Shown: piece by piece, positions 1 to 47,903 of the stretch
Position numbering within the stretch: position 1 is the first letter of the stretch
How the letters are laid out: the number at the start of each line of letters is the position of its first letter
NCBI GenBank assembly: GCA_964019335.1
Contig: OZ025704.1
Coordinates: 372,001-436,000 of the forward strand
DNA from: Diplonema japonicum
Lineage: Eukaryota > Protista > Euglenozoa: Diplonemea
Direction: 5' to 3'
DNA length: 64,000 bases
Notes under the pieces: model-generated
Database searches by the model: none
What the model saw: only the letters and a program-made list of their open reading frames with translations
What the model was told of the DNA's origin: nothing
Position numbers and translations under genes: made by a program

Positions 1-527
1 TGAGCTGACAGGCAGGCTCACAGGGATACGAGGCGTGGCACTATCTCACAACTGCATGTCGCAGCGTACATGGGACTCACTGCAACACACGTCCAGCACC
101 ACAGCCAAGGTGACGTTCACACAAACAATAAACGAAGCGGAGTTCAAGATCTGCGCGCTGCGCAGTGACAACATAACCATTACCGTTGCCACAGCTATTT
201 CCATAGTGTGTGTCAATGGCTACCCTTCCAACGAAAGGTGCGTTTGCTACTCTGATGTAGTCCGGGGACATTGGGCAGGCTCTGCCTGCAACTACTGTAA
301 AGCAGGCTACAGAGGTATACAACAATTAAAAAGAAAAGGAAACGAAAATCACAGGAAATATGTGCCAGCAGAGATATAGCTGTGTGGAAGCACAGTACTT
401 CACACCTTACGACCTGAGATGCTGGGACTACGACGAGGTACGCGAGGCCTACAAAGGCAGCCGGTGTGTATGGTCCGGAGTGGTTGTGTCACAGCACGGC
501 CGGAAGCATCACTGTGTTCCTCCTTGA
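1..527 (+). CDS. 3' part of a Cys-rich laminin/EGF-like domain protein (5'-truncated by the window edge); intron 315-354
   Basis: Frame open from nt 2. Removing GTATAC...CACAG (315-354) gives CVCYSDVVRGHWAGSACNYCKAGYRGNMC (laminin-EGF Cys spacing) and continues to TGA at 525-527. Confidence 0.7.
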
Positions 528-631
528 TCGAAAATAATTTCAGTTCATCCGGTTGCCAGTGCTTCTTTTCTTATTCGTTTCTTCTTCTATATACTTTGTT
601 ACGACCTGCTTCCTACTACCCCCTGTAGACT

Positions 632-2428
632 ATGAGTGGACTTCATGAAGAGATCGAGCGGCATGGTTATGGGTTGGTCTTGCAGGCTTTGGAAGCCATT
701 GATTTCGGTGTGAGAAGCGATGAAGATGAGATAGCGTTCGCGGCAGAGCTGGTGCAGAGTGTCGTCGGGCGGGACGATCAAGAAGTCCTGCAAAGGCTGA
801 AAGAGTTGTTGGAGAAAAGGAACGAGTGCTTCGTGGGCGGGGTGTGCCTCACAAGCGCAGATTTTGTCATGTATCACTGGCTGCGCAGCTCTTCCTTGTA
901 TCCACGGTTCCTCCCTCACGTCAGGGGGACAGAAAACCTAAGAATCAGGACGTGGCTCAAACTCCTCGGTACCACGATCCTTTCGAAGCTCCCAAGTGGA
1001 AAGTACTCCATGCACGTACAAGACGATGGTAAGGCCGAGCGATCACCACTCTCAGTTGTTGGCGTCAGTGAAACTTGCGAGCCGGAAATGCTGTTCAGAG
1101 GTGACAGAAAAAGCGACTTACGGGTGTTGTCCTTCAACATCTTATCAGAAGAGGCGCTCACAAGGTACAAGAATGAGTACGAATGGCTAGTAACCACCGA
1201 AGCTGACGAACGCCGCCGGTCGTTACAGTACATTGTAAGATCCTACAATGCAGACGTCATCTCGTTGGTGGAGGTAGACGCTGACGCTGTGGACTCCTGG
1301 AAGGCGGTGCTCAAGGGGTACCGCATGAAATTCTTCCCCCGCCCGAAACTGCACACGAAAAGGAAGGGGTCGCAAAAACCTGACGGGATCCTCGTCGCGT
1401 ACAAGATCGACACGCTGAAGCCCACCTGTGAAGAGACGAGATACCTTCTTGATGACTATCTTCCATTAGCTTCCGAATTCCGTGCTCCTTACCCCGAGCC
1501 GGGCACACGCAACATTGCAATCATCTTCACTTTTGAGCATCTGAAGACGGGGAAGGAGATTATCTTCGCAACGACTCACTTGTATTGGAACCCGAAGTAC
1601 GAGCGGTACAAACAGCTGCAGGGCTCGCTTGTGAAAGGACTCTGCAAGAAAGCCGCCGCAACACGGGACTCTCCGGTCATTGTGACGGGGGACTTCAATG
1701 CTGCAGCGGGGACGCCGAGTTATTTAAACTTTGTCAGCGATGTGGGGCTGGCATGGGAGAACATGCCCACGCACAACAAAGCGACTGTTTTACCTCAGAA
1801 GATGTCGGATGGGACGTACATGGTGGAATGTACCACATCCTTCCATGAGAAGTTCACAGCACTGCTGTGTGACATGCGGTTTGTGCTTGATGGCATCAGA
1901 GTCATGGGTGGATCAGCGTCACCGTTGGTTGTCCTGACCATCAATGATATTCCCAGAGAGTGCGAACAAGAGGCTGTTGAAAATGGTGTGAAACTGGTAC
2001 TCACTCAGCCCTTCACGCCACACACGGAACAGCTGACTGTGAAGATAGTCGGGGTCGTGACACCGCCGAGCGAGATTTTCTTTATCTACAGTTTGAAAGG
2101 AAAGAAGCTTGCTTCTGCTTTCGCTGACTACTCGAGCTACAGAATGCAGTTCGGCATCGAAGCTGAAAAGGAGCTCAAAGAGAAGGAACGCAACATTGAG
2201 ATCTGTGTGAATAGGTCCGTCTTGGAACCGCAATTCACGATCTACCAACCGAGGAAGTTCATCGGAACTCTTGACTACATCTTCTACACGCTGAACGACT
2301 TCTCTGTCTCAAACCTCTCCAGGCTGGCTACTTTCGCAGAGGTACAGCCCGGCATGCCTAATGATGTCTCCATCCACTCCGACCACCTCCCCATTTGTGC
2401 TGATTTTTGCTTCAACACCCAGGCGTAG
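632..2428 (+). CDS. CCR4/Angel/nocturnin-family EEP nuclease/phosphatase with an N-terminal GST-C-like region
   Basis: EEP motifs LRVLSFNIL, DVISLVEVD, ATTHLYWNP, VIVTGDFNA, GTLDYIFY, HSDHLPICADF. N-terminal LQRLKELLE...FVGGVCLTSADFVMY resembles a GST C-terminal helix motif. Confidence 0.85.
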   Translation: MSGLHEEIERHGYGLVLQALEAIDFGVRSDEDEIAFAAELVQSVVGRDDQEVLQRLKELLEKRNECFVGGVCLTSADFVMYHWLRSSSLYPRFLPHVRGTENLRIRTWLKLLGTTILSKLPSGKYSMHVQDDGKAERSPLSVVGVSETCEPEMLFRGDRKSDLRVLSFNILSEEALTRYKNEYEWLVTTEADERRRSLQYIVRSYNADVISLVEVDADAVDSWKAVLKGYRMKFFPRPKLHTKRKGSQKPDGILVAYKIDTLKPTCEETRYLLDDYLPLASEFRAPYPEPGTRNIAIIFTFEHLKTGKEIIFATTHLYWNPKYERYKQLQGSLVKGLCKKAAATRDSPVIVTGDFNAAAGTPSYLNFVSDVGLAWENMPTHNKATVLPQKMSDGTYMVECTTSFHEKFTALLCDMRFVLDGIRVMGGSASPLVVLTINDIPRECEQEAVENGVKLVLTQPFTPHTEQLTVKIVGVVTPPSEIFFIYSLKGKKLASAFADYSSYRMQFGIEAEKELKEKERNIEICVNRSVLEPQFTIYQPRKFIGTLDYIFYTLNDFSVSNLSRLATFAEVQPGMPNDVSIHSDHLPICADFCFNTQA

Positions 2429-4655: not shown

Positions 4656-7215
4656 ATGGAGATTGAAGCGGAGCTCAGAACCCCTAGCTTTAGTGCGAGC
4701 TTCAATGCACCATTTAGCTCCCAAGCAGCGTTGGAGGTGTCGTCGGACTTGAAGAATCTCAGTTTTGGGAGTCAGTCGAACTTGATGCTGGGAAATGAGT
4801 GGCAGTTCTGGCTGGACGAGGACGAAGGCCGCCCACTCTCGCTTGGTGTGATCAGCACCATCAAGTTGTTCCGCTGGTTTTATAACAGGCTGGCACCGGA
4901 AGGGTTGCCTTCTAAAGCCGCAGTTCTCCTTTTCAAGAACGGCATCGAGCCCACGTGGGGGCACCCGAAGAACAGACGCGGTGGGCATTTCAAAATGACA
5001 TGCAAGACAACAGGCCACCTGTTCCGCTTGTGGCACGACGTGGCAATGGTGCTCATTGGTGAGCAGTTCTCATTCGCGAAGCAAATTAGCGGTGCGGGGT
5101 GCAGCCTGAAGAAGGGAACAGTCACCTTTTGGCTCAGCGACGCTGACGACGAGGAAGCGATACAGCAAACAAGAGCGCAGCTGGTCAACCTGCTCCCTGC
5201 AGGCGCGACGATCTCTTTTCGAGACCACACGTCACTGCTGGGCAAGGAGTCCGCCATGATCGTGGGCGCAGGCATCATTGACGCTGACGTTCCCTCCCTC
5301 TCCCAAGCAACAGATGGCAGCAAGCTCGTCGGCATCGCGGCTGAGCTCGTTCCTCACACAGCACGCCATCAGAAGAGCCGGAGCTGCCCCGAAGAACTTG
5401 CCGAGTTCGACCCCGACACCGCCCTCACGCCTCCGATCAAGCGGCCCCGAGCCTTCTCCGAGGCGGCGAAAAACCACCAAACAAAACCCGACCCACCCCG
5501 CAACAGGGGCAGATCCTGCAGCAAGGTGCTCGCAAAGAAGAGAACCGAAAGCCCAGTAAATGTCGGTATGAGGAAGGTCCTCAGTGCCGATGCACTTGAC
5601 GAGTACATCCCCCATGAGCCCATCCAAAGCTCGATCCCCACCCTGAAGCATGTGCGTTCGTGGGCAGACGAATGTGACTCTCAGGTGAGCTCCAGGTGCA
5701 TCTCACCAACTGGGGGCGATCTGTCAGAGGGGGTTGAGCGCCAGCCCCTCTCCTTCATGCCTTGCAGGCAGTCGCCGCGGGCGTCCCCGCAGAGGAACGC
5801 TGCCTTCTACGACATGAACGCGCCCATGAGCGACTACATGAGCGGCAACGAGACGTGGGACCAATCAGGACCTCCCTCTTTGGCCCAGTCAGGGCCCACT
5901 AGCCCCTCGGGTCCGGCGGCGCAGTCTGGCACCGGCCTGTTCCATGGTGGCTCCCCGACGCACACTCCGTACTCCACGTCACCCTTCTCCGGTTCGCCAC
6001 CATCGGGCTCTCCTGTTCACTCACCCTATGCGTCTCCCCAGTCCGCACCGTTCTCTCTAGGAGGTTCTGTGATCCCTGCGCATGAGCCTGCCAAAGCACC
6101 AGCGCAAGTGCAGCAGGGTGTCATGACCGGGCACTCTCCCGTGATCATACAGCACAACCAAACACACACGGTCCACCCCCACCACAACACAGTAGCATCT
6201 CCCGAGCAGCTGAAGGTCCAGCTAGACCAACTCATGCAGCGGCAACTGCTGCAGCAAGTGCCTGTGCAGCAGGCTCATCCCCAGAGCGCTGTTCTGCAGC
6301 AGCAAGGCCTTCGAGGCCCAGGCATGATGCCCTGGGCAGTGCCGCTTGCTGTTCCCATGCAGCAGCAGCTCGCCGCACAGCACCTCCACCCGCAGATGCA
6401 GCTCCAGCAACAGCAGATTCAACATCAACAGCGATACGTGCAATACCAGGTCCCCCAACTGGCCCCTGCGATGAGTGGCTCGCTCCCGAACCTACACAAC
6501 GGGAACCTCAACGCGAAGGGGAGGAAGCCGGTGCAGCAGCCGCAACAACAGCAACCGCAGCAGCAGCAGCAGCAGCAGCAGCAGGTAAGTGCGTGGGACA
6601 CGAAGAAGCTGCTCGACTATCTGACGGAGGCGTCAGGGCTGGATGTGATCCAAGGTGAAGATGCAGAGGAGAAGACGATCAGCAAGTCACGCTCGCCGAG
6701 GAACAGGAGGAAGATACGAGAAAGGAAAATAAAGGAAGCAGCGGAGGCGGCAAAGCGAGAGATGATGTTGTGGGGAAGGGTATGCCACCTATAAAAAAAA
6801 AAAAAAGAATTTAAAAAAAAAAAAAAAAAAAAGGTCTTCGGCACTCCTGAAAACACATGGGTAACGCCTGAAGACAATATGTACCTCCCTATGCCACCTT
6901 CTTTTAATGAGACGGATTGGTTTAGATTCGTGCAGGCCTGCAAGAAGGAGCAGGTCGGCATGACACAGCTGAGCCAGTTGCAACAGGAGATGTTTGAAAA
7001 GCTTGGTGTTGAGGATCAGGAGCAGGTTAAAGATGTTCTCCAGGCAACGCCTATGATGGGACCGCAGCCACACCCCCTTATTGCCCTGACCGAAAAGATC
7101 CTCCTCCAAGAAAAGGTATGAGGAAATTGCTATTTTTAAGATATTCTTACAGGCTGGCCAAGTGCCTCTCTCTCAGGCTAACAACTTTTTAACGGCCCCT
7201 CAGATGCAGATGTGA
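4656..7215 (+). CDS. Divergent eIF4E-family protein with a long S/P/Q-rich C-terminal extension; introns 6780-6833 and 7116-7152
   Basis: eIF4E motifs LGNEWQFWLD, LLFKNGIEPTWGHPKNRRGGHF, LWHDVAMVLIGEQF, VTFWL. Two GT-AG introns join ORF 4650-6794, ORF 6879-7121 and a last exon ending TGA 7213-7215 in frame. Confidence 0.8.
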
Positions 7216-11960: not shown

Positions 11961-12366
11961 ATGACCAATCTTTTTTAAAAGATAAGGCCTTTTTTATATC
12001 TCTGTTAGTCTCCTTTAACATTTAAGCCCCCTCCGCCCCTCTCGCTTCACTAATTGCCCCCCCTTTTTCTTTATTTTTGTAAGGAGTAACCGGAACATTG
12101 ATTGGGCGATGATGGTGGTTTTTATTTTGCCTGGCCCTTTTTATTTTGTATAGGTTCTTTTTTTTTTTTAAAGTCCCCTCCCCGCCCTACTGATTCTCCC
12201 GCATTTACACGGCTAATGAAAAATTATTTTCATTTTTTTTTTCCATTATTAAAAAGATCTGTTTTCTTCGTTTTATTTTTTTTTTCCCATAAGACTTCAT
12301 TATAGTGAATTTGATATTATGTTATCCTCGCCCTCCTTTATCACTAAAACAAGAAACAACAACAAC

Positions 12367-12397
<31 letters not shown>

Positions 12398-12463
12398 CCA
12401 GCATCCACCGCTCATCCAGAATACACAAGGAGAAAAAAAAAAGAAAAAAAAGGGAGGAAAGAA

Positions 12464-15125
12464 ATGGCGACCCGCGCAGGGCAAGGTGTGTTTGTATACT
12501 GCAACACAGTAAAGCACGATGCTGATGTAAGATGTGTGGCTCCGCACCCGAATCTGGATGGGGGGCTGATAACAGCGTCGTACGACAAGACAGCGAAGGT
12601 GTGGATGGTGGGAAAGGCTGGGGAGGAAAGCGAGACCGTGTCAACCTTCGTAGGGCACACCGGGTGGGTGGGATGTGTGACATACCTTCAAGGGTCCGCC
12701 GGGAGCAAGTCCTTCATGGCGACTTCCGGTTGGGACAAAAACCTCGTTCTGTGGGACTTAGAATCCTGCCAACCAGAATGGCTCCTCGAGGCCCACACCG
12801 ACAAGGTCACCTGCATAGCCGCCCTCAGAGGCGGTGAGATCATTACCGGTGGCTACGACAAAACAGCAATCCTCTGGAAAGACGGGTACCTTGTAAAGAA
12901 ACTGACGAACCACACAGCACCTGTGGCCTGTGCCTGCGGGTTGGAAAACGGCGATGCTGTAACAGGCGGTGCCCATGGCGACAACTCTCTCATGAGATGG
13001 TCGTCCAAAGGCGAGCTTCTCAAAGTATTCAAGTCGCACACATCCGGCGTCAGGGGTGTTGCATCTGTCTCGGCGACAGAGTTTGTCTCCTGCAGCAACG
13101 ACATGACTCTCATCTTGTGGTCCATCAACGGTGCCGTCTTGCAGACCTTCGCGGGGCACAAGAACCAAGTCTACTCCGTCGCAGTCCTTCCCAGCGGGGA
13201 GTTCGTCTCCGGTTCGGAAGACAAAACTGTGAAGGTGTGGAACATCGAAGGGGGTTGCATTCAGACAATCCCCATGCAGTCCTTCGTCTTCTCCGTCTGT
13301 GCGCTTGCGAACGGCGACATCGCCGCAGGCTGCACCGACGGCACAGCAAGAATCTTCACCCGCTCCCCTGAGCGTGTCGCACCCGAAGACAAGGTCAAAG
13401 CCTTCAACGACGAGGTGGCCAACCAGAAGATCTCGAAGGGCGGTCTTAGCGGACTTGACATGGCCACGCTCCCAGGAAGGGAAGCCCTACAGACCGCTGG
13501 TGTATCCGAGGGACAGCAAAAAATCATCAAGTCAGAAAAAGGTGCGGAAGTATACTGCTGGACCATGGCCAAGCAGGCGTGGGAGAAGGTCGGCGACGTG
13601 GTTGACGGTGACGGTGAGGATTACACGGGCCCCACCAAGGTGGTGTACAAAGGGAAGGAGTGGGACTACGTGTTCGATGTGGACCTGACGGGCGACGGGA
13701 ACGGGATGTTCAGACTCCCCTACAACAAGGGAGAGAACCCCTACGAGGCGGCGCAGAGGTTCATCCACGACCACACCGAGTCGGGCATCACGAACAACCA
13801 CTTGGACCAGATAGCTAAGTTCATCTTCGACAACGCAGAGGGGACTGGCATCGCTGCTATTTCCGCCGACGCCTGTGTCTCTGACTACGCGAGGGAGGCA
13901 GCAGCTGCGGCAGCGTCGGGCACCAGCAGCATGTCCAACATTGAAGCTCTCCGCAAGATGGAGAAAGAAGGGACTAGCACCGCCTTCTCCGAGTACGCGA
14001 AAGAGGCAGCCGCTGCGGGTATCGAGTCCACGTCGATAAAGGACAACATGAAGAAGCTCGGTGATGGTGATGGACTTGCTTACTCAGCCTTTGCCCAAGA
14101 AGCGGCTCAGCTGAGCGCTGGGCAGTCCGTGGGCGCGGGAGGGTTGAAGCCCGTTCCCGAAGGGGTGTTGGGGGACTTCACGACATTCACGAAAATCAAC
14201 CCGGAAGGGATGGCGAAGAAGCTGTTGCAGCAGAACACGGAACAGCCTGCAATAGGTTTGGACACGCTGCTAGCGGGGGTGGACGCGATGGGCAGCGGGG
14301 CCCTTGCAACAATACCTGTGCAAGTGGCGAGCATTTTCACGAAGTGGTCTGCAGGGCAACGGTTCGCCGCCATCGACTTCCTGCGGCAGGCGGTGCTGAG
14401 CCCGACGATCGCATCCGCCGCAGGCAGTGACCCTATCCTGTCGGAAGCCTTCACCTTGTTCATGAGCTCGGATATCCCTGCTGCTGTAGGGCCGGAGATG
14501 GGGCTCTGTTTGAAGGCGTACTGCAACCTGTTTGCGACGCCAGCTGGGCGGGGGGTGGCCGAAGGCCTGGCTGTGAAGACCTTCGACTCCCTGCAAAAGG
14601 TATGGGTCTATAACACCAAAACAAACAAAAAAAAAGTTATGGAGAAGTGCAGAGCCCCCTGTTCGAGTGCTGTACGCAACCCTCCTACTCAGCTTCGCCA
14701 GGCACTACAGAGAGCAAGTATGCTTGACCACACCTAACCACATTGTACACAACCTACAGGATAAGGCGGGTAGTGTTGCTGCCGACATGGTACCGACTCT
14801 GTGCACTGGGCTCCTTTACGACAAGGAACCTGCTGTCATCGGGCTGTTGCTCAATGCGCTTGGTATATATTTTGTTTTCTTTCCTTTTTTTTTTAAAACA
14901 CGTGAACAGGATGCCTGATGCTCCCAGGAAGCGGAAAACCCACATTCTCCATGGAATGCGCAAGTCGTGCCAAAAGATGTTTCCTACAGGATTCCCTGCG
15001 GGCAATTATCCCGCCCACTGTCCCCGCTACTGAAACCGTGGTATGAACGGGGGAGGCGGACAAAAAAGAAGATATACACAATTACACAGTCTCAAATACA
15101 AGTCTTGCTGAGCATGATCGAATAG
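12464..15125 (+). CDS. PLAA: Phospholipase A2-activating protein / Doa1 (WD40-PFU-PUL); introns 14600-14636, 14718-14759, 14863-14909, 15041-15089
   Basis: WD40 repeats (TASYDKTAKVW, SGSEDKTVKVW); PFU motif GKEWDYVFDVD...LPYNKGENPYEAAQRFI; PUL-like RFAAIDFLR, ATLLLS, NALGCL restored after splicing; TAG at 15123-15125. Confidence 0.92.
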
Positions 15126-15284
15126 GCAATTTATTAAAAAAAAAGAAGAGGGGGGAAAAAAAAGAGAAGGTCGAGGTGGGGTATTTCTGTTTTTTTTTTG
15201 TTGCTCTTCTCTTATTTTCCATAGGACTTTTCTTTCCACCCCCCCTTTTTAGTCTAGACGTGACTTTCTTCCCCCAAACCTTAG

Positions 15285-15315
<31 letters not shown>

Positions 15316-15478
15316 CGAGAAAACAAAAAAAAAGTGTGGGTTTCTTTTTTTAAAAATTCCTAGCCCCCCCCAGAAAAAAAAAGTTCCAAGAATTCTTTAA
15401 GAGAAAAAAAAAAAGAACCCAGCTTCTACTATTTAAAAGAAAAAAAGGAAGGACCAAACAAAAAAAAATAAAATAAAA

Positions 15479-17401
15479 ATGGGACGAGATGAAGGCGGCG
15501 GGGGGAAGGGAAGGGGCACGACTGTGGGAAAGCCGATGAACAAAAGTGCTGCGAACGTGCAAATTACTGCAGAGCAGCTGTTGATTGAGGCAAGGGACAG
15601 GACGGAGCAGGAACCGCATAGGCAGAGGTCGAAGCTTCACGACAAGGAGGAACTGATGGAGTACCGATCAACGAAGAGAGGGGAATTCGAAAAGCTCATC
15701 CAAAGAAACAAGGTGTTGATGAGCAACTGGACGAAGTACGCCAGATGGGAGGAAAACCAAGCAGAGTTCGTCAGAGCAAGATCAATCTTCGAGAGGGCCT
15801 TGGATGCCATTCCGGCAAACCACTCCCTCTACCAAAAGTACGCCGAAATGGAGATGAAAGCGGAAAACATAAACAGCGCCAGAAACATATGGCGACGCGC
15901 AGTCACAATCCTCCCCCGCGTGGACGGCCTGTGGATGAAATGGGCTTTAATGGAGGAGACCATTGGTGATGTCGCAATGTGCAGAAAGGTCTTCCAAGAC
16001 TGGATGGGTTGGAAGCCCAAATCACACGGCTGGCATCTATTCGCGAAATTTGAAATCCGGTTCAAGGAAATCGAGAAGGCAAGAGACGTCATTCGGCAAA
16101 TGGTTACTTATTTCAACGACGAACCAAGCTGGCTGTACTTCGCACGGTTCGAGGAGAAGTACGGAAAACCCGCATTGGCACGCCGTATCTATGAAGAAGG
16201 ATTGGACGCACTGGGCACGGAATGCACCGACAAGATCTTCATCGCGTTCGCAAAGTTCGAGGAACGCCAGAAGGAGTTCGAAAGATCCCGCGGCATCTAC
16301 AAGATCGCGCTTGACAGGATCAGCAAGGACAAGGCACCGGACTTATACGCGACTTACGTAGAGTTCGAAAAGATGTACGGCGAAAGGCAAGGGATCGAGG
16401 ACGCGCTCATCTCACGTCGGAGATTTGAATACGAAGAGTCCATCAAAGCAATGCCTTACAACTACGATGTTTGGTTCAATTACGTCCGCATGGAGGAATC
16501 CCAGAACAATCCCGAACTCGTCCGCGATCTCTACGAACGCGCCATCGCCGTGAAGCCGATGAACGAGAAACAATACTGGTCAAGGTACGTGTACCTGTGG
16601 CTTATGTACGCTCAGTACGAAGAGCTAGACATGGAGGATAAGGGAAAGGCCGACAAGGTGTTCCAAGCCATGCTTCGCGCCATCCCGCACAAGATGTTTT
16701 CCTTCTCGAAGGCGTGGATCGCTTACGCTGAGTTCCTTCTTCGCTGCAACCGTCTCGACGACATGCGAAAGGTAATGGGAAACGGGTTGGGCGCAAACCC
16801 CCGGCCGAAAATGTACAGATGGTACGTTGAACTGGAAGTAACACTGGGCAACATCGAAAGAGTTCGAGGGTTGTACACGTCATGGTTGAAGGCCGTCCCG
16901 TCTGACGGTAGGGTATGGGCGAGGTTTGCTGAGTTCGAACTTACGCTAAATGAGACAAAACGCGCCCGCGAACTATTCGAGCTCGGGGTTTCTCAAGAGG
17001 TCCTCGACCAACCAGAGCTTCTTTGGAAGAAATACATCAACACCGAGATCAAATTGAAGAACTACACCCGTGCTTCAGAGCTGTACAAAACCCTTGCCGG
17101 GAAGACAAAGCACGTTAAGGTATACCTAGCATGGGCCAACATGGAACGCGAGACTGTTAAATCCATCGATGCCGCGCGTGCTGTTTATGAGGAGGCTGAT
17201 ATTACTTTGTCGGCGGATGCTGAGTCTTCTGAGGAGCACAACTTTCTGCTTGAGCAGTGGAAGGCCTTCGAGGAAGCCCACGGGACCCCCGCAATGGCGG
17301 ACAATGTCGATGTTAAACTCCACCCAGAGAAGGCCAAGAAGAAGTCGTCGAAGCTCATGGAACGCGCACAGGCTTGGAAAAAGCGTAAGACACAAGAGTA
17401 A
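15479..17401 (+). CDS. CRNKL1: Crooked-neck / Clf1 / Syf3 HAT-repeat pre-mRNA splicing factor
   Basis: NKSAANVQITAEQLL, WTKYARWEE, RARSIFERALD, RAVTILPRVD, NYDVWFNYVRMEE, C-terminal KLMERAQAWKK. Confidence 0.95.
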   Translation: MGRDEGGGGKGRGTTVGKPMNKSAANVQITAEQLLIEARDRTEQEPHRQRSKLHDKEELMEYRSTKRGEFEKLIQRNKVLMSNWTKYARWEENQAEFVRARSIFERALDAIPANHSLYQKYAEMEMKAENINSARNIWRRAVTILPRVDGLWMKWALMEETIGDVAMCRKVFQDWMGWKPKSHGWHLFAKFEIRFKEIEKARDVIRQMVTYFNDEPSWLYFARFEEKYGKPALARRIYEEGLDALGTECTDKIFIAFAKFEERQKEFERSRGIYKIALDRISKDKAPDLYATYVEFEKMYGERQGIEDALISRRRFEYEESIKAMPYNYDVWFNYVRMEESQNNPELVRDLYERAIAVKPMNEKQYWSRYVYLWLMYAQYEELDMEDKGKADKVFQAMLRAIPHKMFSFSKAWIAYAEFLLRCNRLDDMRKVMGNGLGANPRPKMYRWYVELEVTLGNIERVRGLYTSWLKAVPSDGRVWARFAEFELTLNETKRARELFELGVSQEVLDQPELLWKKYINTEIKLKNYTRASELYKTLAGKTKHVKVYLAWANMERETVKSIDAARAVYEEADITLSADAESSEEHNFLLEQWKAFEEAHGTPAMADNVDVKLHPEKAKKKSSKLMERAQAWKKRKTQE

Positions 17402-17461
17402 ATCGGAAAAAAAAAAAAAAAAAAAAAAGAGAGAGAAAAGAAGAAAAAAATGGTATTTTTT

Positions 17462-17501
<40 letters not shown>

Positions 17502-17706
17502 AGGATCGCTTCATCCAGGTTTTTTTTTTATAGTGTTTTTTAAGTTCAGTGTGTGTGGGGGGGGGGGGGGGGGTGGTGGTACCTTTAATCAAAAAAAAAA
17601 AAACTGGAAAAAAGAAACCTTTGGAATTTTTTATTTTTTTGTATTTGGTTCCCCCCAACCCGAAAAAAAGAAGAGAGGGGGGAGGGAGGAAAGAAAAAAA
17701 AAGAAG

Positions 17707-18106
17707 ATGGGAGACCACGAATTCGAGGAGGAGGACCAGGAGATCACTTTGAACTCCGATAAAATTACAGAGATTTTGGAAGAAGCAATAAAACAAACAC
17801 TACAAGGCCAGTCGTGGCAGCCTAAGAAGGTCGAGGGGTGGACTTCAAACATCATTGAACATTGCCTGAAGCGATTAGCAGAAATGAAAAAGCCATTTAA
17901 GTACATAGTTACCTGTATAATAATGCAGAAAACAGGGGCAGGACTGCACTCCTCCTTCAGCGCGTTCTGGGACAACTCGGCAGATGGTATGGGGAAAAAA
18001 AAAAGATTTTTCTTTTTAACAATTTGCAGGAATTTGCTGCTACCCTCTTATGGACAACGACACCATCCACTGTGTGGTGACTGTTTACGGTTTAAAATTG
18101 GATTAG
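17707..18106 (+). CDS. DYNLT: Dynein light chain Tctex-type; intron 17987-18029
   Basis: KPFKYIVTCIIMQKTGAGLHS...FWDNSADG. After the intron: ICCYPLMDNDTIHCVVTVYG, TAG 18104-18106. Confidence 0.93.
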
Positions 18107-33100: not shown

Positions 33101-34531
33101 CTCGAAGTGGAGCACGGCAAGAGGTCGCAGCTAGAGGGCAGGATTGCCGGCCTCGAGACAGTACTCGGGAACAAGGAAGCAGACCTTACAAACGCTGTGG
33201 AGCAGAACAATGCCTTGCTGACCAAGATAAAACTGATTGAAAAAAGCAGCAACGACAAGAGCATCTTGGAGGACAAGATCAACCTACTGGAGCACGAGGT
33301 CCTCACGCAGAAAGACGTCATCAGCAGGCTTGAGAGTCAGGACGCACGCAGAAGGGAAGTAGAGCAGAGCCTGCGTGTAGAAGTTGAGGCAGAGGAAGGA
33401 AAGCTTCGCTTGCTTGAGAACGAGCTACACAATCAGACACAGTCGAGATTCGACCTGGAGCACAGGCTGAAGATGGTGGAGGAAGAAGCAGAGGAATTGC
33501 TGAAAGAAAGCAACAGCGAGAAGAACGAGCTCAAGGAGCAGATATGCACACTGCAACTGGGGAAGAGGACGCTTGAAGAAGCCGTCCAACAAGACACAGC
33601 CTCGAATAGACGGGCACAGGAAAAGCTGCTGACTCTAGCACAGGAGAACAAGAGCTTGATGGAGAGCGTGGCGGCGATTGAAGAGGAGAAAGGGAAGATG
33701 GACGTCGAGTTCAGAGAAGCAGTGCGCACACTGGACATCGAGAAGGCGGAGAAGGCCGCGCTGCAGGAGATGGCAATAGAGTACAAAGACAAGGTGCTTA
33801 CGATGGAAAAGAAGGTTAAAATGAGTACCAGCAGTGCAGTCACCACGGAAAACAGGCTCACCACAGATCTGAGACTGAAAGAACAGCAAGTGGAGAACTT
33901 AGAAAGTGCCGTGAATGAGCTGCGAAGGGAGCTGACCGAAAAGACGAGAAGGCTGCAGGACAAGACGGAATGCTTGAGCAAGGAGCAGGATAGGGTGCTG
34001 GATGCTGAGAGGAAGGCCCGTGACATTCACGAGCAAGCGATTCTGCAGCAGAGGTCGATGCAGGACACCGAAACGAGGCTGGGGGAGATGCAGAAACAGC
34101 AGGCGACGGTGATGCAACTGAAGGAAGAAATTGCTGTTGCTCTCCAACACAAAGAGCACGCCCTGCAGGACGTGATGAAGCAGGTCCACGTGTACAAGAA
34201 GAGAGCTGAACAGGAGCAGACGGCTGCTGCGTCTTTGAAACGAAGCCTTGCAGAGTCGGAGGCCGACCTGCACGCCTACGAAGAGCGTGTCAGGGAGATG
34301 GAGAGGAGGCTGACGAACTTCGACAGCGAATCGGCTGCGAAGGTGGCTGGTCTTGAGGCAGAGAGGTATGCGTGTGCAAAAAAGAAAAAAGAGATTCATC
34401 ATACTCAAAGGGGCGAGAACGAGGCAACTGCTGCATTGCTGAAGCGTGAACTGCACGAACAGCTGGAAGCCTCACGCGAAAAGGAACGGAACTATAAAAA
34501 GACTATTACAGCGCTTACTCAAAAATGGTGT

Positions 34532-34584
<53 letters not shown>

Positions 34585-34833
34585 CCTGGCCACCGCCCCA
34601 CAGCACGTTAGCAGACGAGACTCTCAGTAAGTTTGAAGATTTCAGTACCTACAACGGCCAGCTACGGGAGAGCAATACCCGCCTTCGCGAGGAGCTTGAG
34701 GGATCGCGTCAAGAGCTCGAGGTCACTCGTGATCAGGTTTGTCGTCATGTTAGTTTGTTTTTTTTTACATTCTTTTCTCCAGGTACTGGACTTGCAAGCA
34801 CAGTTGTCCCGTTCAATTCATAAGTTTGGATAA
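30158..34833 (+). CDS. Large coiled-coil protein (about 1,500 aa) with an S/T/P-rich head; introns 34366-34410, 34528-34603, 34737-34782
   Basis: Continuous 1490-codon ORF of E/K/Q/L heptads. GT-AG introns restore the frame to TAA at 34831-34833. Confidence 0.8.
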
Positions 34834-37758: not shown

Positions 37759-38749
37759 ATGAACGCGGTGACGGCAAACCGGCTGCTGTACCTAGGGGGA
37801 AACCTGCGAGGGGTGCTGACTGGGCTCCTGCAGAGCTGCTACAATGATGCCACTGCAGATATAACAAAAATCAAACAGAAATCAGACTTGGCTGACCGAT
37901 ACCAGACCGAGATCAACGACCTTGGCACCAAGCTGGGCATGAAAGGCAAGATGGTCACAATCAAGGACCCTGTCGTCCTCAAAGAAGTTTACTATGCAAA
38001 ACGAAGGCAGCTAGTGCAGTTAACCCAGGACGACACCGTCTACAATGGGATGAAGAAAACACTTAAGGCGGGGTTACGGTTCAAGCCAAACAGCGTCGGA
38101 ACGTTCCTACACAGAGAGGTACCCTACCTGCCACCCAACTTCGACTGGAAATCCTCGGGCAAGGCATTGCTGATACAAGAAGGCTTCGATTTGAAAAGAT
38201 TCTCCCAACTCATACCAACGTGTGTACAGTCGAAAAGAAAAAAGAAGAAAAAGAAAGAGGAAAAAAAAAAAGAAAATACAGCTGCCTTGCTTCAGACGTC
38301 CGAACCATATTTGTTGACACAAATAAAATGGACTTTCTGCCGGACGGGACACTGACTGGTCTCAACACCCTGCTAGCCACGCGAGGGCAGGTCGAGCGCA
38401 TTGCACTGTACAAGGTACACTCCGCGGTTCATACAGTCAAAGCAGCGAAGCTCAATGGAGTGAACATTTATGGCATGTCCCAGCAGACCTCGGCAGCAAG
38501 CCGATCGGTGGAGCTGAACAAGGTATGAAAGAAAGACAAAACCACCCCCGCACACAGATAACCCCAATCTCGCATAACAGTTCTGTCCCAGTCTTGTTTG
38601 TTATCGGAAAAGAAGGCGAGCCTCTGCAGCCGCGAGTTCAGAAGTATTGCAAGGTTGTGGTCAGCCCATCGGCCGCCCAACGGCTGCCATTACAGGAAAC
38701 AGCATTTCTGGGTGCGGTGCTCGGGAGGTTTGTGGACCCGAGTTTCTGA
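37759..38749 (+). CDS. Degenerate SpoU/TrmH (SPOUT) RNA-methyltransferase-like protein; introns 38220-38281 and 38523-38557
   Basis: Three ORF pieces joined by GT-AG introns. C-terminal VLFVIGKEGEPL...VQKYCKVVVSP resembles SpoU motif 2 (lvlGxEgxG). Gene model is firm, family call is tentative. Confidence 0.55.
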
Positions 38750-39724: not shown

Positions 39725-42022
39725 ATGTCTGACGGCAACTGGGATGGGCAGCAGTACGGCCAGCAGTATGGCCAGTACCCTCAGCAACAGTATGGGCAGC
39801 AGCAGCAAGGTGCTAAGGGTGGTAAGGGCGGTTACCAACAGCCCTGGCAGCAACAGCAACAACAGCCGCAACAGTGGCAGCAGCAACAGCAACAGCAGCC
39901 GCAGCAGTACGGGCAGCCCCAACAGTGGCAACAGCCCCAGCAGGGTTACCAACAGCAGTACGGCCAGTATCCCCAGCAGCAGGCTCAGCAGTGGCAGCAG
40001 CCTCAGCAGGTACAGGGACAGGCCCAGGGGTACCAGGCCCAGACCCAGGCGTACAACCCCCAGTCGCAGCCCTACGTGCCCCAGGGGCGCGCAGCATCTC
40101 AGCCCATGATGATGCAGCCGCAGGCCCAGGCAAAGCCCACGCAGCCTGTGCCTAAGCCCAGCGGCAAGTCAGCCGTCCCGGGTAAGCTCCAGCCCCGTCA
40201 GGTCGGCGGCGGTGGCAACACCGGCGTCCCCGGCAAGCTCCAGCCCCGTCAGGTCGGTGCCACCGATGGTTTCATGAAGGGCGGAAAGAAGGGCGACTCC
40301 AAGAACGTGGTCCTCCCCATGCCCACTCAGCCCCAGCAGCAGCCCGCCGCCGCCACCACTTCTGAGGCACCGAAGCCTAAGCCTAAGGCCAAGTCCATCT
40401 CTTTGTCCGCAACCAAGAAGCCTGAGAAGCCTGAGGAGAAGAAGGAAGAAAAGAAGGTCGAGGAGAAGGAGAAGGAGAAGGAGAAGGAGGAGAAAAAGCC
40501 CGAGAAGCCCAAAGAGGAACCCGTTGCACCAGCTGTTGCGTCGCCCAAAGAGGCTGAGGAGGCGGAGAAGCTTCCGCCCAAGGAGAAGAAACAATACAAG
40601 AGAGACCCTAGGCCCCACTTGAACTGCGTCTTCATAGGGCACGTCGACGCTGGTAAGAGTACCATCAGCGGGAACATGATGGTGCTGAGCGGCTGCGTTG
40701 ACGACAGGACAATGGAGAAGTACGAAAGGGAGGCGAAGCAAAAGAACCGTGAGGGGTGGCACCTGGCGTACATCCTGGATGTTGATGAACAGGAGCGAGA
40801 AAAGGGAAAGACACACGAGACGGGTTCTGCGTACTTCGAGACCCCGGACAGGAGGTTCACAATCCTGGATGCCCCTGGGCATAAGGCCTTCGTCCCGTCC
40901 ATGATCGGTGGTGCATGCCAGGCCGATGTTGCCGTCCTTGTGATCTCTGCAAGGAAGGGAGAATTCGAGACCGGGTTCGAGAGGGGTGGCCAGACCCGTG
41001 AGCACGCGCTGCTTGTGAAGACATGCGGTGTGAGGTACCTCATCGTCGCCATCAACAAGATGGACGAGCCCAGCGTGGCCTTCTCCGAGGAGAGGTACAA
41101 TGAGATCGTGGAAAAGCTGACGCCGTACCTCAGGCAGATCGGGTTCGCTAAGAGCCAGTTCGAGTTCCTCCCCGTCTCCGGTCTGACAGGTGTCGGGCTC
41201 AAGACACCCATCCCTCAGGAAAAGTGCCCGTGGTGGGATGGCAGGTCTCTCCAGGAATGCCTGAACAACCTTCAGGTCCCGGGTAGGAAGGAAGACGACC
41301 CTGTGAGGTTCCCTGTGCACGGGAAGTACAAGGATGAGGGCAAGGTTCACGTCCACGGCAAGATCGAGTCCGGGCAGTTCGGGGTCGGCGACAAGGTATT
41401 ACCGATGCCTAACTATCCCCCCCCCCCCCCCCCCTCTAACCCTTACCACCACAGCTTCTCGTCCAGCCGACCAGAAATATTGCGGTCATCGAAGGCATCA
41501 CTCTTGAAGACCATGCTCAGGAGGCGGGTTTCGCTGGCGACCACTTGATATTGAAGCTCAAGGGCGTGGAGGAGGAGGACATGAGGGCAGGATACGTGCT
41601 GACTGACCCGAGAGAGCCGCTGAAGAACACCATCTACTTCCACGCACAGGTATGCCGCGTCCCTCAAAAAAAGAACAATAATAAAGGTGATGATTTTGGA
41701 TGTGAAGAGTATCATCTCATCTGGCTACTCGTGCGTGATGCACATCCACTCGGCTGCTGAGGAGGTTGTTTTCCATGAGCTTCTTGCAACGATTAACAAA
41801 AAGACGAACAAGGTAATTGAGAAGTACCCCAAGTTCGTTAAGGGTAACGAGTGTGTCATGGTCAGGATGGAGGTCAGCCAGTCCATTTGCATTGAGGAGT
41901 ACAAGACCTTTGACAGGATGGGTAGGTTCATGCTTCGTGATGAGGGAAAGACCATCGCCGTCGGTGTCGTTACCAAGCTCCTGGAAAAGTGCCCTGACAA
42001 GGTAGGCCCCAATGTTGCCTAA
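39725..42022 (+). CDS. GSPT1: Eukaryotic peptide chain release factor 3 (eRF3/Sup35); introns 41396-41454 and 41650-41686
   Basis: HLNCVFIGHVDAGKST, DAPGHKAFVPSMIGGA, SARKGEFETGFERGGQTREH, INKMD, GRFMLRDEGKTIAVG; Q/Y/G-rich N and K/E-rich M regions. Confidence 0.95.
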
Positions 42023-42972: not shown

Positions 42973-43252
42973 ATGAGCATGAGCGAAATAAAACAGAAGG
43001 ACACCCCTAAGGTGAGCCCTATTGAGGAGCTCTTCACGGGGGTAGAAGAAGTAGTTGAAAATGAAGTGATGATGAACACCGAGGACTTGAAAGTGCTGGA
43101 AGCTATCAACATGGGGCTGAAGAGCAAGTACACAGGGATGACACAGAGGTGCGACAATATCCAAGGGGCACTGCTAGAAATGTTGAAAGACTACCAAGAC
43201 TTGCAACCGTACTTTGCGCAAATTGATTCTTTGGAGATGTATGCTTTTACTC

Positions 43253-43283
<31 letters not shown>

Positions 43284-43378
43284 ACAGATCTCTTTCCCGA
43301 TTGGAAGATGTGGCCAACCAGCTGGAAACCTACTCGATCAACCTAGAACAAAGGGTTATTAGCCAGGTTACTTCTTGA
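42973..43378 (+). CDS. BLOC1S2: BLOC-1 subunit 2-like; intron 43239-43287
   Basis: EDLKVLEAINMGLKSKY..M; LQPYFAQIDSLE; after the intron SRLEDVANQLETYSINLE; TGA 43376-43378. Confidence 0.85.
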
Positions 43379-44406: not shown

Positions 44407-45751
44407 ATGTCGCTTGTTGAAGGAACAGCCTCGCCGCCCATGGAGGAGACACCTACACTTATCCTGACAGAGGAGCCAACGGAGGAAGAAAACCCGGAGA
44501 AGGAGAAAAAAGAGAAGTACGAGCAGCTCGTAAAGAGGGTGGCAGTGCTGGAAGACGAGATCAAAAAAGCCGGCGAGGAGCTGGAGGCAAGGGAGAAGCA
44601 GCACGTGCAAGAGGTCGCAAAGCACGACAAGATAAAGGCGAACATCATCGAGACGTCGAAAGGGAAGGTTGAGCAACAGCAGCAGGAGATCAAATGCCTA
44701 GAGGAGTCCATCGACGAGGTGGCGAGCGAACTCCTTCTATATGAGGAGAGGCTCTCGTACGACGCAAGCAAAGTCCATGTCGCACGGGCAGAAGCAGAAG
44801 CTGAGAAGGAGAAAATCGCCTCGCAAAACCTCAAAGCCGAATCAGAATCCCGCAACACAAGGAGCACCCTAGCCGACAAGACACACACACTCCTCAAGGC
44901 CCACGCGAAGACCATGACACAGCTCTACAACGACGTCTTCAAAGCGAGCTCACGGGTCGCAGCAAATAGGAACGATGCTGCTGCCGAACAAGAGGAACGC
45001 AGCAAGCAGCATATCGCAAGCATCGAAGAGTACAAGGAACAGATAAACAGCCTTGAAAAAGACATCACGGAGTGCCATGCTGAAAAGAAAACGCTCGCAA
45101 GGGCTAGAAACGAAATGGCAAAGGAAAAACACATAGCCGAGACACAGGTAGCAAACGCCAGGACAGCCCTGTGCACAATGGAAGAGGCAATGCATAGTGA
45201 GCTCCTCAAGCTGCATAGAGAGAACACTGCTCTTGTCGCGGAGCTGCGCACCCTGCAGAGCGCCAACGAAGCCAAGTCCAGGCAGAGGGGCCTCGACACA
45301 AAGCAAGAAAAGGAGAATAATCTCAAACTGGAGATGAAGCAGCAGGAGGCCGTCCTATACGCCAAGAGGTCCGAGGTGGTCGCATCACGGGAGAGCCGCG
45401 TGGCTAAGGCAGTGGCCCTGACGCTCAAGGCAAGAGAGGAGATCGTAGATCTTGCTGATAAAACACTGGAGCTAGAGAGAGTCATGTACAATAAAATCGC
45501 GAAGGCGATGCAGAGCAGGAACGATGGGTATGGCAAACGATAAAAAAAAAAAGAGGGGGAAAAAAAAGGAAAAAAAACAGGCTCCAGAAGCTGCAGCAGT
45601 CTAAACAAATTGAGAGTGAGAAAGCGGGCCAGCTGGAGATCCTCAAGGCCAAGCGCATTCTCGAAGCCGACAGCTCTCAGGTATGTCAAGTAATGCCACC
45701 CAAAAAAAAAAGAAAAAAAAAAAATAGGAAAAGAAGAAAGCGAGAAGGTAA
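44407..45751 (+). CDS. Coiled-coil protein; introns 45528-45580 and 45681-45727
   Basis: 378-codon coiled-coil ORF. Two purine-rich GT-AG introns extend the frame to TAA 45749-45751. Confidence 0.7.
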
Positions 45752-45982
45752 GAAAAAAAAGAAAAGGTTACATGAAAAAAGAAGGAAAAAACCACCTTTT
45801 TTGTTTAGATTTTTCCTCTTCTTTTCCCCTTCCGGTTTTTTTGGTTGGGGGAGGGGGGTCTTTTTTTATCTTAGATTTATTTTCTTTTCCTTTTTTTTTT
45901 CCCCTTTTTTTTTAAATTCTTGAAAGATAAATTTCCCTTTTTTTACGACTCGTTCTCAACCTAACGTGACAGGACAAACACG

Positions 45983-47903
45983 ATGAGCGAGCAGAAGGAG
46001 TCAATGTCACCCGAGATGGACAGCGAACAACTTGAGGACGAGCTGGTGGCCGTTACAAAAAGAGTGGCAGAGCTGGAGAAGGAGAAGGCGGAGAAACTAG
46101 AAAAGGTAAAAACAAGACTGGCAGAGCTCGCAGAGGAAGAAGCAATGACGAACAACGTAATCTCACACCTAGTGACAGAGTACAAAGACAACTTCGCGGA
46201 TCTAGTACACAAACGAAAGGACCTCTGGGACCAGGTTGAAAAGGTGAAAAAGAATGTAGAGACGAAGAAGAACGAAGTCGAGAGCATCACCAAGACGCTT
46301 GAGAAGGTGAAGGCCGACTCCGACAAGGCTATCATCAGCATGGAAGCGAACGCAGATGACTCACAGCGACGCTTCGAGAACCTCGAAGAATCCTACGCCA
46401 CCTGCCTCGAGCAGGCAAAGGCAGACACCAAGGCAACAGAGTCTGCCATGAGGTCCCTTGCCTCCGACTACAAAAGCTCCCTTTCAACTGGAAGCCCTTC
46501 AAAAACCAGCCCGGAGTCAAAGAAAGCAGAGGCCAACCCAGAACAGAAGGCGTACAAAACTGTCGTCACAGAGCTTACAAACCTGCTGAAGGGGAGCAGA
46601 GAGGATGTGAAGTCGATGAAGGCGAAGGACGACGACGAAAGAACGCTTGCAAGGTTGAAGAAGGAGCTGGAGAACATCAAGCAGACGACCACCATCCTCG
46701 AAGACTTCCTGAGGGAGAAGCGGGAGGCAACGAAGCAGAGCAACGGAGAGCTGCAGTACGCGATCGCAAAGGCCAACAGCACGAGCGGCAGCCAGGCACT
46801 GGACACGACAGAGATTGAACTGGACGCTAGTATCGCACTGATGGAAACGAAGCTGGCAAATATGCGGTCGGCAATTGAAGAAGTATGCCTTGCACCAGAT
46901 GGGGTTGCTTCCATCGGAACAGAGGTTGCAAAGCAGCAACGTATGTCACCATTCACAAGCAACGCAGCACAGAGGCGGAAGAAGAGGCTGCCAAGCACCG
47001 TGCCTTGTACAACGCGAAGTCCGACTCTTTTGAGAAGGAGCTCACCGACCTGAAGAATGAAACATCTGAAGCGTATGTTAGCATCTGAACGTCAGCCTTT
47101 TGCAGGAAGACAGCTTTGACCGCATCGCGTGCGGCGATCAAGCAGATGGAAGCCTGTTTGAATGGTATGCGTTATCCTTTTGGTATCACCGCATTGTAGA
47201 TGACGGATCTGACTCCGACACAGACAGCAGTAGCAGCAGCAACAGTAGCGAGGCCAAGCCCAAGAAGGCTGCGAAGAAATCAGCTAAAAAGGCAGCTAAG
47301 AAGCCAGGGAATAAGGTTGCGAAGAGAAAGCGTGACGAAAGCACCGATGACGACGACGAGGCTACGGTGGAGAAACCCAAACTCAAGCCAAAGCCAAAAC
47401 CAAAAGCCAAAGGAAAGGGAAAGGATCGCGCCGCAACCGACAGCAGTGACGACAGTGACGACTCACAGGACGACAGCGAACCTCCCGCAAAGAAACCTAA
47501 AGGCAGGCAAACCAAGGCAAAGAAGCCCGAGAAAAAAACACTGGCCAAAACTAAACAACACGACGAGGAGGACGAAGAAGACTCGAAGAAGGGACGGGCA
47601 AGTACCAAGTCCACCAAGAAAGAAACCGATACGAAAAAAGGAAGAAAGTCCACCAAAGCCGAAGACGCCGAAGAAACCCCGAAGAAGGGAAGGCCAAGCA
47701 CTAGGTCAACCAAATCAAAGAAAGAGGAAGAGGAAGATGAAAAGCCTAAAAAGGGCAAACAGTCCAAGAAAAAAGAGGAAGAGAAGAAAAAAACAGCCAA
47801 GAAACCTGCAACGAAGGTGAGCAAGAAGCGTCAAATCTCCGAATCTGAGTCCGAAAGCGAAGTGTCTGAAACACCGAAAAAGGTGAAAAAGGGAAAGAAG
47901 TAG
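45983..47903 (+). CDS. Coiled-coil protein with a K/D/S-rich histone-H1-like tail; introns about 46941-46972 (boundaries ambiguous), 47073-47105, 47165-47199
   Basis: Consecutive ORF pieces joined by GTATG...AG introns. Tail contains PKKAAKKSAKKAAKK and KKGR(A/K/P)ST repeats; TAG at 47903. Confidence 0.65.

Follow-up and report, generated by a model that had tools for sequence, protein, structure and literature searches.

Short introns lie towards the 3' ends of genes in a same-strand array

We analysed a 64-kb stretch of the Diplonema japonicum genome, hereafter the window (positions 372001-436000 of contig 57 in a 62.5-Mb assembly of 132 contigs), and the location of the short spliceosomal introns along its genes. 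Every long open reading frame (ORF) is on the + strand, and homopolymer-rich spacers separate the ORFs. Gene models were obtained with a hidden Markov model (HMM) that combines a three-periodic coding model, donor and acceptor matrices and an intron length distribution in a Viterbi parse, and the output for the window was curated. The models contain 25 GT-AG mini-introns of 32-76 nt in 12 genes, from position 315 to position 47223 (Table 1), in the context AG/GTATG...A-rich...ACAG/G. All 25 are found at relative positions of at least 0.51 along the coding sequence (CDS), most of them beyond 0.75. They all lie within ~840 nt of CDS from the stop codon, the majority within 400 nt. In two genes (37759-38749 and 45983-47903) there are mid-gene introns, at relative positions 0.51-0.62 and 440-840 nt of CDS before the stop.

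A sequence-only reading of the same DNA had proposed about 25 GT-AG introns, 32-76 nt long and with GTATG-type donors, confined to the 3' ends of 13 genes between 315 and 47199. The number, sizes and donor type were borne out, with 12 genes and an end at 47223 instead. The distances that it gave from the first intron to the stop codon were reproduced for the eIF4E-like (435 nt), PLAA (525 nt), GRIP (450 nt) and coiled-coil (470 nt) genes, as well as for gene 37759 (530 nt), eRF3 (626 nt), gene 44407 (225 nt) and gene 45983 (962 nt). A 'PPR-like gene', whose intron had been placed 380 nt ahead of the stop, turned out to be two merged genes, an intronless HAT-repeat gene and a separate gene for a Tctex-type dynein light chain. 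The latter is separate because a spliced-leader tail is joined at 17670, upstream of its ATG. Gene 37759-38749, called 'SpoU-like' in that reading, gave no Pfam match.

Table 1. Genes, introns and trans-splice site of the window, in window coordinates (last row, contig 19). Relative position is along the CDS; scores are splice-signal scores.
Feature	Position	Strand	Length (nt)	Relative position	Evidence and remarks
Partial Cys-rich gene (end ~527), intron	315..354	+	40		~170 nt CDS to stop; splicing restores ORF; score +3.2
eIF4E-like gene	4656..7215	+			CDS 2469 nt; Pfam IF4E domain in exon 1
eIF4E-like gene, intron 1	6780..6833	+	54	0.86	Poly-A rich; gene model
eIF4E-like gene, intron 2	7116..7152	+	37	0.97	63 nt to stop
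PLAA/Doa1-type gene (WD40-PFU-PUL)	12464..15125	+			828 aa, 5 exons; Pfam; protein P0001
PLAA, intron 1	14600..14636	+	37	0.86	Transcript joint and P0001; site common to two other diplonemids
PLAA, intron 2	14718..14759	+	42		In frame, stop-free; transcript joint and P0001; same site in P0003
PLAA, intron 3	14863..14909	+	47		GTATAT donor, T-rich; skipped by one contig; P0001
PLAA, intron 4	15041..15089	+	49		36 nt to stop; transcript joint and P0001
HAT-repeat gene (Syf1/Clf1/PRP39-like)	15479/15536..17401	+			Intronless; Pfam HAT repeats; contigs colinear 15485-17397; stop 17399-17401
Spliced-leader acceptor AG	17668..17669	+			mRNA body begins at 17670; tail seen in contigs from two runs
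Tctex-type dynein light chain gene	17707..18106	+			118 aa; name from reading of translation
Tctex gene, intron	17987..18029	+	43	0.78	77 nt to stop; joints in three runs
Gene 25870-27375, intron 1	26995..27036	+	42	0.79	Gene model
Gene 25870-27375, intron 2	27268..27300	+	33	0.95	Gene model
GRIP-domain golgin gene (27472-30083), intron 1	29634..29673	+	40	0.85	Next exon holds GRIP domain
GRIP gene, intron 2	30023..30059	+	37		24 nt to stop; gene model
Coiled-coil gene (30158-34833, CDS 4509 nt), intron 1	34366..34410	+	45	0.93	
Coiled-coil gene, intron 2	34528..34603	+	76		GTGTGT donor, ~50-T run; weak score -1.5; frame continuity alone
Coiled-coil gene, intron 3	34737..34782	+	46		GTTTGT donor; 51 nt to stop; weak score -2.4
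Gene 37759-38749, intron 1	38220..38272	+	53	0.51	Gene model
Gene 37759-38749, intron 2	38523..38557	+	35	0.79	Gene model
eRF3 gene	39725..42022	+			733 aa, 3 exons; Pfam; protein P0241
eRF3, intron 1	41396..41454	+	59	0.76	GTATTA donor, C-run; P0241; site common to two other diplonemids
eRF3, intron 2	41650..41686	+	37	0.85	P0241; exon 3 contains eEF1A-like C-terminal domain
Small gene 42979-43378, intron	43239..43287	+	49	0.74	Gene model
Gene 44407-45751, intron 1	45528..45580	+	53	0.90	Poly-A rich; gene model
Gene 44407-45751, intron 2	45681..45727	+	47		24 nt to stop; gene model
Gene 45983-47903, intron 1	46941..46972	+	32	0.53	839 nt CDS to stop
Gene 45983-47903, intron 2	47073..47105	+	33	0.59	Gene model
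Gene 45983-47903, intron 3	47165..47223	+	35 or 59		Acceptor 47199 (35 nt, score -2.5) or 47223 (59 nt, +0.6); frame kept by both
HSP70 paralogues, contig 19	278284-284618, 339683-344779, 367194-372287, 423519-428818				

Transcripts and exact protein matches support the window models

Transcript contigs from three public runs (X1-X3) of a 95-99% identical relative were aligned to 6 kb of the window (12200-18199). GT..AG joints were found at 14600-14636, 14718-14759, 15041-15089 and 17987-18029, and one contig skips ~14863-14909. The contigs are colinear with the DNA over 12737-14594 and 15485-17397. A 42-nt hole in transcript coverage at 16966-17007 was considered as an intron and rejected, as it has no GT-AG ends.

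Every residue of the spliced PLAA and eRF3 models agrees with the transcriptome-derived EukProt proteins P0001 (828 aa) and P0241 (733 aa), respectively. These exact matches fix the start, the stop and all six introns of the two genes and exclude a hidden intron in their first exons of 2.1 kb (PLAA) and 1.7 kb (eRF3). For these two genes, the claim that kilobases of 5' CDS carry no intron is thus established. Three of the 10 single-exon models that we looked up (2737-4206, 21849-23303 and 35291-37000) are also exact EukProt members; the other seven had no exact match, an outcome that start choice or allelic differences would also give. Taken together, five joints or skips in the contigs and six introns missing from two exact proteins show that the mini-introns are removed from mature RNA.

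Domain content agrees with the exon structures. Pfam places the GRIP domain in the penultimate exon of the GRIP gene and the eEF1A-like C-terminal domain in exon 3 of eRF3, and it weakly matches the end of EF-Tu domain 2 to eRF3 exon 2. In PLAA, what is left of the PUL domain has to be in the small exons.

PLAA intron 14718-14759 is in frame and stop-free, and therefore reading of ORFs can miss introns. Its retention would add 14 residues and, although transcripts prove it, ORF reading cannot detect it. The sequence-only reading had left room for such in-frame introns hidden in the 5' parts of genes; this real one is in the 3' part of PLAA, and the first exons of PLAA and eRF3 have none. The 76-nt intron 34528-34603 is mostly a run of ~50 T, and other introns carry long A, T or C runs that resemble the intergenic spacers.

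The array is trans-spliced

In transcript contigs of two runs, a 16-17-nt tail ending in AGTTTCTGTACTTTATT is joined to the mRNA body at 17670. We read AGTTTCTGTACTTTATT as the probable 3' end of the spliced leader because, in a pattern count over the whole genome, it is followed by NGT in 161 copies, against 0 for the reversed control. These copies are dispersed genome-wide, and many of them are less than 10 kb from contig ends. The window therefore displays both a long series of same-strand genes and a spliced leader on mRNA 5' ends, the features that define a euglenozoan-type array. At 30083-30158 just 75 nt separate the stop of the GRIP gene from the next ATG, with a pyrimidine-rich tract and CAG directly before that ATG. 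This tract, before the ATG at 30158, contrasts with the A-rich 3' regions of the introns. The right part of the window is gene-poor and contains an ORF with reverse-transcriptase-like sequence (57763-58713), probably a fragment of a retroelement.

The 3' skew extends beyond the window

We extended the analysis to positions 100001-200000 of contigs 1 and 10 (200 kb), which with the window gives 264 kb. Overall, ~320 kb of the 62.5-Mb genome was read, with ab initio models outside the window. The finder models introns of up to 100 nt, and allowing up to 3 kb merely fused neighbouring genes. Signal matrices were fixed or refitted once without any composition reward; when retrained unsupervised with an A-rich interior model, the finder strayed into poly-A intergenic DNA and joined genes together.

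In the 264 kb, 98 genes and 114 short introns were predicted. By quintile of relative position, the 114 introns of the three blocks are distributed 5/16/16/23/54, those of the two non-window blocks 5/15/13/17/37, and those of a high-score subset with ~3% false discovery, as estimated by decoy runs, 1/9/11/17/40. In the two non-window blocks, the mean position per gene exceeds 0.5 in 30 of 42 intron-bearing genes (Wilcoxon p = 4e-5). In CDS of at least 1.2 kb, the first 400 nt have 0-0.19 introns per kb, the middle has 0.32-0.49 and the last 400 nt have 1.25-1.73 (chi-square p ~1e-10 overall; p ~0.001 in the two other blocks alone, where the corresponding values for genes of at least 1.2 kb are ~0-0.3, 0.4-0.6 and 0.9-1.4). 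As a function of distance to the stop, the final 200 nt of CDS carry ~2 introns per kb, the stretch 200-800 nt away ~0.9 and the CDS further upstream 0.1-0.5, while the first 300 nt of CDS have 0.1-0.3 per kb. Thus, short introns are 3-6 times denser in the last 200-400 nt and return to the background level past the stop. The excess in 5' portions that is typical of intron-poor eukaryotes was not found. The skew is not local but genome-wide in the sampled sequence, and the descriptive core of the sequence-only reading, a bias reversed relative to intron-poor eukaryotes, holds.

The introns themselves are uniform. Among 103 first-pass introns, 60 start with GTATG, 77 have G at -1 and 81 have C at -3; their median length is 42 nt, and A is the commonest base from -20 to -4. 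Phase 0 accounts for 62% of the 114 introns, phase 1 for 13% and phase 2 for 25%, and AG/G is the commonest exon context (33/114). The strict motif AGGTATG-N22-45-ACAGG has 915 matches in the genome (e.g. C1:736655-736708 and C2:642164-642217), against 103 for its reversed control. Such matches often seem to be paired 100-500 nt apart. A few of them are identical intron-like sequences at separate loci, on different chromosomes or in tandem paralogues.

Supported introns are also found far from the stop

The proposed confinement of all introns to 3' ends stands for the window, where all are in the 3' half of their genes, and fails elsewhere in the genome. In the non-window blocks there are full-consensus GTATG...CAG introns that preserve the ORF and are separated from the stop by 1.6-3.9 kb of CDS. 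In a reverse-complemented block of contig 10 (C10), to which the following coordinates refer, five consecutive introns occupy 0.33-0.49 of a 3.3-kb CDS (71003-71656) and are followed by a 1.65-kb terminal exon. Three introns are found at 0.31-0.37 (47207-47461), two at 0.20-0.25 (96786 and 96918), and two at 0.15 and 0.22, ~3.3 and 3.0 kb from the stop (53616-53674 and 53958-53993). Exon 1 of the gene with the latter pair ends within a guanylate-kinase domain, at profile position 106 of 182. In tblastn alignments, the D. papillatum 'Guanylate kinase' P0123 and the diplonemid transcript-derived protein P0121 are colinear across 53616-53674, with a frame change. Intron 53958-53993 has a stop codon in frame, and each of the five homologue alignments has a gap there. 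Exon 2 of this gene gave no BLASTP match to the second kinase domain of the same protein, and no Pfam match alone.

Conserved families gave a similar picture. Pfam-mapped junctions in HSP70, proteasome, actin and chaperonin genes lie at 0.13-0.86, with short terminal exons invisible to this method, and the models of the chaperonin (Cpn60_TCP1) family have introns from 0.28 to 0.98. Of the nine chaperonin paralogues (contigs 9, 14, 19, 70 and 104), five have a modelled intron 27-80 nt ahead of the stop. Its profile position is similar in these genes without being identical (472-487 of 490), and in four of them the Pfam alignment breaks off a few bases or less from the predicted donor. A putative CCT-beta gene (contig 63, - strand) has predicted GTATG introns at 199026 and 198915, 42 and 105 nt downstream of the ATG. 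The one nearer the ATG interrupts a motif that we take to be conserved at CCT N-termini, and 5'-proximal mini-introns thus seem to be tolerated in an essential gene. In tandem HSP70 paralogues of contig 19, the intron at Pfam position ~77 measures 43 nt in one copy and 1.9-3.4 kb in four others. Thus there are kb-sized 5'-proximal introns that short-intron or ORF scans cannot see.

Across the 114 introns, neither signal score, length nor poly-A content changes with position. Because of the supported distant introns and these position-independent splice signals, we conclude that distant introns are removed like the others and that there is no positional limit on cis-splicing.

Introns at 3' sites are shared among diplonemids and clustered

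Proteins called from ORFs alone in other diplonemid genomes are 52-67% identical to D. japonicum PLAA and eRF3. They run unbroken through the 5' 85-90% of PLAA and through the GTPase domain of eRF3. At the site of PLAA intron 1, P0002 and P0005, from two species, break off with a 'VC' read-through; P0003, from a third species, does so where intron 2 lies. P0242 and P0244 (two species) diverge after ...GDK with 'VC' or 'VS', at the eRF3 intron 1 site. We read these ends as introns because 'VC' and 'VS' are the translation of a GTATG-type donor. On this comparison, the 3' introns at these PLAA and eRF3 sites are shared among diplonemids, and the pattern is old. P0002, P0003, P0005, P0242 and P0244 are thus C-terminally truncated proteins in public sets, and 'VC'/'VS' read-through ends allow conserved introns to be mapped cheaply.

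Clustering is a further feature of the introns: internal exons have a median of 139 nt, where pooled positions would give 326 nt (P < 0.001, all introns), and the clustering is weaker in the high-score subset (P ~0.08-0.1). A short-word BLAST of the 114 introns against each other and the 264 kb, a small sample, detected no intron sequence families, only low-complexity matches.

Origin of the skew

These are ordinary U2-type GT-AG mini-introns of D. japonicum, unusual only in their location. We favour, with a probability of about 0.6, a strong but not absolute 3' skew that is the product of intron turnover in the diplonemid lineage, by asymmetric loss or retention. As to loss/retention as the mechanism itself, our preference is tentative and stays a little below even odds. 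Under this mechanism, introns would have been removed in blocks from the 5' and central parts of genes, and remnant clusters would be left mostly at 3' ends. Two circumstances would favour this. In polycistronic trans-spliced genes there would be no gene-specific promoter or cap-proximal context, and the benefit supposed to preserve 5' introns elsewhere would be absent. The last intron, near the poly(A) site or the next trans-splice site, might be neutral, or it might help to define the terminal exon in very tight arrays. The 3' sites common to diplonemids and the clustered survivors speak for loss/retention.

A number of points count against this reading. Classical cDNA-mediated loss takes 3' introns first, which is the opposite polarity (PMC3488318, PMC11613528), and a conversion mechanism that includes the 5' end is hypothetical. 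The near-terminal introns seen in five CCT paralogues out of nine would be just as compatible with repeated gain near the 3' end. In HSP70, proteasome, actin and CCT genes, the junctions mapped by homology show a weak skew (~0.13-0.86), and introns over 100 nt, which lie outside the models and include a kb-sized 5'-proximal one in at least one family, may make the total intron content less skewed than that of mini-introns. Introns that would be harmless if retained (3n, stop-free) show no 5' enrichment. Conservation of 3' sites was seen in two genes only, and the models outside the window are ab initio, from a sample of ~320 kb.

The evolutionary explanations offered by the sequence-only reading, loss from the 5' side and purging of 5' introns, survive in this form, with the proviso that capture by the spliced leader could explain the 5' depletion but not the 3' peak.

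3'-biased intron gain, in the diplonemid ancestor and later, is an alternative origin of a standing 3' bias that we find unlikely, though worth weighing. Such gain might proceed by reverse splicing into mRNA, with 3'-anchored reverse transcription and recombination as the next steps, or short polyadenylated retroposon stubs might be inserted. The uniform contexts (AG/G in 33/114 introns, 62% in phase 0) would suit gain, as would the A-runs of at least 8 directly before the 3' splice site in 26 of 114 introns. Five CCT paralogues have near-terminal introns at differing positions, and CCT paralogues diverged very early. However, the PLAA and eRF3 3' sites are common to species with 52-67% protein identity, hence not recent; poly-A-rich and complex introns share one positional distribution; and no multi-copy intron family was seen in the 264 kb, a small sample, but low-complexity matches only. 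Gain mediated by reverse transcriptase (RT) in 3' portions has been proposed in the literature (PMC3488318), but a later analysis argues that RT acts in loss only (PMC3488318).

Spliced-leader capture at the acceptors of 5' introns might instead yield truncated mRNAs, so that 5' introns are purged and the 3' excess is what remains. Trans-splicing is active in the window, and the first 300-400 nt of CDS are nearly empty of introns (0-0.19 per kb; 0.11 by motif alone). We conjecture that the A-rich 3' regions of introns might keep their acceptors distinct from trans-splice acceptors. Yet capture accounts neither for the sharp maximum over the last 200-400 nt nor for the scarcity of introns 0.8-1.5 kb from the stop, and the modelled CCT-beta introns close to the ATG, like the HSP70 intron at Pfam position ~77, argue against it. 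Spliced-leader joints at intron acceptors, which the sequence-only reading had proposed to look for, were not seen in the single stretch with transcript data (12200-18199). As a full explanation, capture is improbable; it may contribute to the 5' depletion only.

That the skew is an artefact of ORF reading, model errors or spurious stop-skipping 'introns' is more improbable still. There are grounds for the suspicion: the first model missed the real in-frame intron 14718-14759, a second called a false one at 13500-13541, and the earlier reading merged two genes. Three decoy motifs of equal information produced 36-39 'introns' per run, of which 20-24 merely approximate real ones and ~15 are false. 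About 40% of the false ones fall within 50 nt of the stop, which is a real bias of the method. Nevertheless, when real introns were implanted at random CDS positions, recovery was 0.81-0.96 in each decile and independent of position. ORF extensions upstream of predicted starts score as non-coding, and therefore there is no sign of missed adjoining 5' exons. The skew is unchanged at the score threshold where decoys nearly vanish (~3% false discovery), and it also holds when the last 100 nt are ignored. A motif-only scan that ignores frames gave 0.11 sites per kb in the first 400 nt, 0.35 in the middle and 0.97 in the last 400 nt, with at most 0.03 per kb on the antisense strand in CDS and a background density just past the stop. 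In addition, the contigs (five introns) and the two exact proteins (six introns) agree with the models, including the lack of 5' introns in those genes. The artefact explanation is thus largely refuted.

Finally, the position-restricted cis-splicing put forward in the sequence-only reading, in which the spliceosome would recognise or tolerate introns only a few hundred nt from the poly(A) or next trans-splice site, would fit the window, where the introns are at most ~840 nt of CDS from the stop and mostly under 400 nt, but it is hardly credible given consensus introns with ORF continuity 1.6-3.9 kb from stops in other genes of the same genome (those at 3.3 and 3.0 kb being backed by homologue colinearity and an in-frame stop), a run of five ahead of a 1.65-kb terminal exon, and scores and lengths that are independent of position.

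Comparison with known systems

In D. japonicum, 10,131 RNA-supported introns have been described, 98% of them GT-AG, with a (G)/GTATG donor, a median length of 41 nt, an A-rich tract and CAG, and eight were validated by reverse transcription PCR (Thakur et al. 2025, PMC12621601). The introns of the window and of the other blocks have the same consensus, length and A-rich tract as that set. RNA-supported introns are far more numerous in some other diplonemids, 60,346 in S. specki and 98,221 in A. motanka (PMC12621601), which suits a history of loss. The accessible parts of that study contain no analysis of intron position along genes, and terms for intron position were not found in the accessible parts of the D. 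papillatum paper and its supplements. The genome note for D. japonicum YPF1604 comes without annotation (PMC13598402). We found no report of a 3' intron bias in diplonemids or other trans-splicing protists in the searchable literature, with most subscription journals outside the search. Thus, the introns themselves are already published, and their 3' positional bias appears new, pending a genome-wide analysis of junctions.

Intron-poor unicellular eukaryotes have a 5' intron bias (Rogozin et al. 2012, PMC3488318), which has been explained by 3'-anchored cDNA-mediated loss or by the function of 5' introns (PMC3488318). D. japonicum resembles them in its sparse introns (~0.7 short introns per kb of CDS), its constrained GTATG-type donor and the very existence of a positional bias. 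The polarity is reversed, however, with a peak in the last 200-400 nt and a minimum in the first 300-400 nt. Similarly, the joint loss of adjacent introns is a recognised footprint of RT-mediated loss (PMC11613528), and the tight clusters of survivors in D. japonicum fit such a loss of neighbours. In contrast, the preferential 3' loss expected from RT is not seen, as introns survive at the 3' end.

Positional bias is one of the few genome-wide footprints of how introns are lost and why they are kept. A moderately intron-poor, trans-splicing eukaryote of opposite polarity and without gene-specific promoters would be a natural test of the loss and 5'-function explanations, which predict differently here because there are no gene-specific promoters and mRNAs are capped by trans-splicing. 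Existing data make the question testable: a chromosome-level assembly, poly(A) RNA-seq, five other diplonemid draft genomes and the annotated D. papillatum genome. In practice, many diplonemid proteins will lose their C-termini in annotation pipelines that look for introns at the 5' end or close a gene at its first stop codon.

In animals, splicing of the last intron is coupled to polyadenylation (terminal-exon definition), and in trypanosomatids polyadenylation is coupled to downstream trans-splicing. Several features of D. japonicum recall terminal-exon definition: in many genes an intron precedes the stop by 24-100 nt, terminal exons are about the size of internal exons, and genes are tightly packed. 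Many other genes are intronless, however, and a link between the last intron and 3'-end formation is hypothetical in diplonemids. We can therefore only speculate, and consider it rather unlikely as a whole, that diplonemids are the first eukaryotes with a documented genome-wide 3' bias of spliceosomal introns caused by their mode of gene expression, 5' introns having lost their usual value and the last intron being kept or regained as an aid to terminal-exon definition and to polyadenylation and trans-splicing. If this were true, the classical 5' bias of intron-poor eukaryotes would reflect the function of promoter-proximal introns as much as 3'-anchored cDNA-mediated loss.

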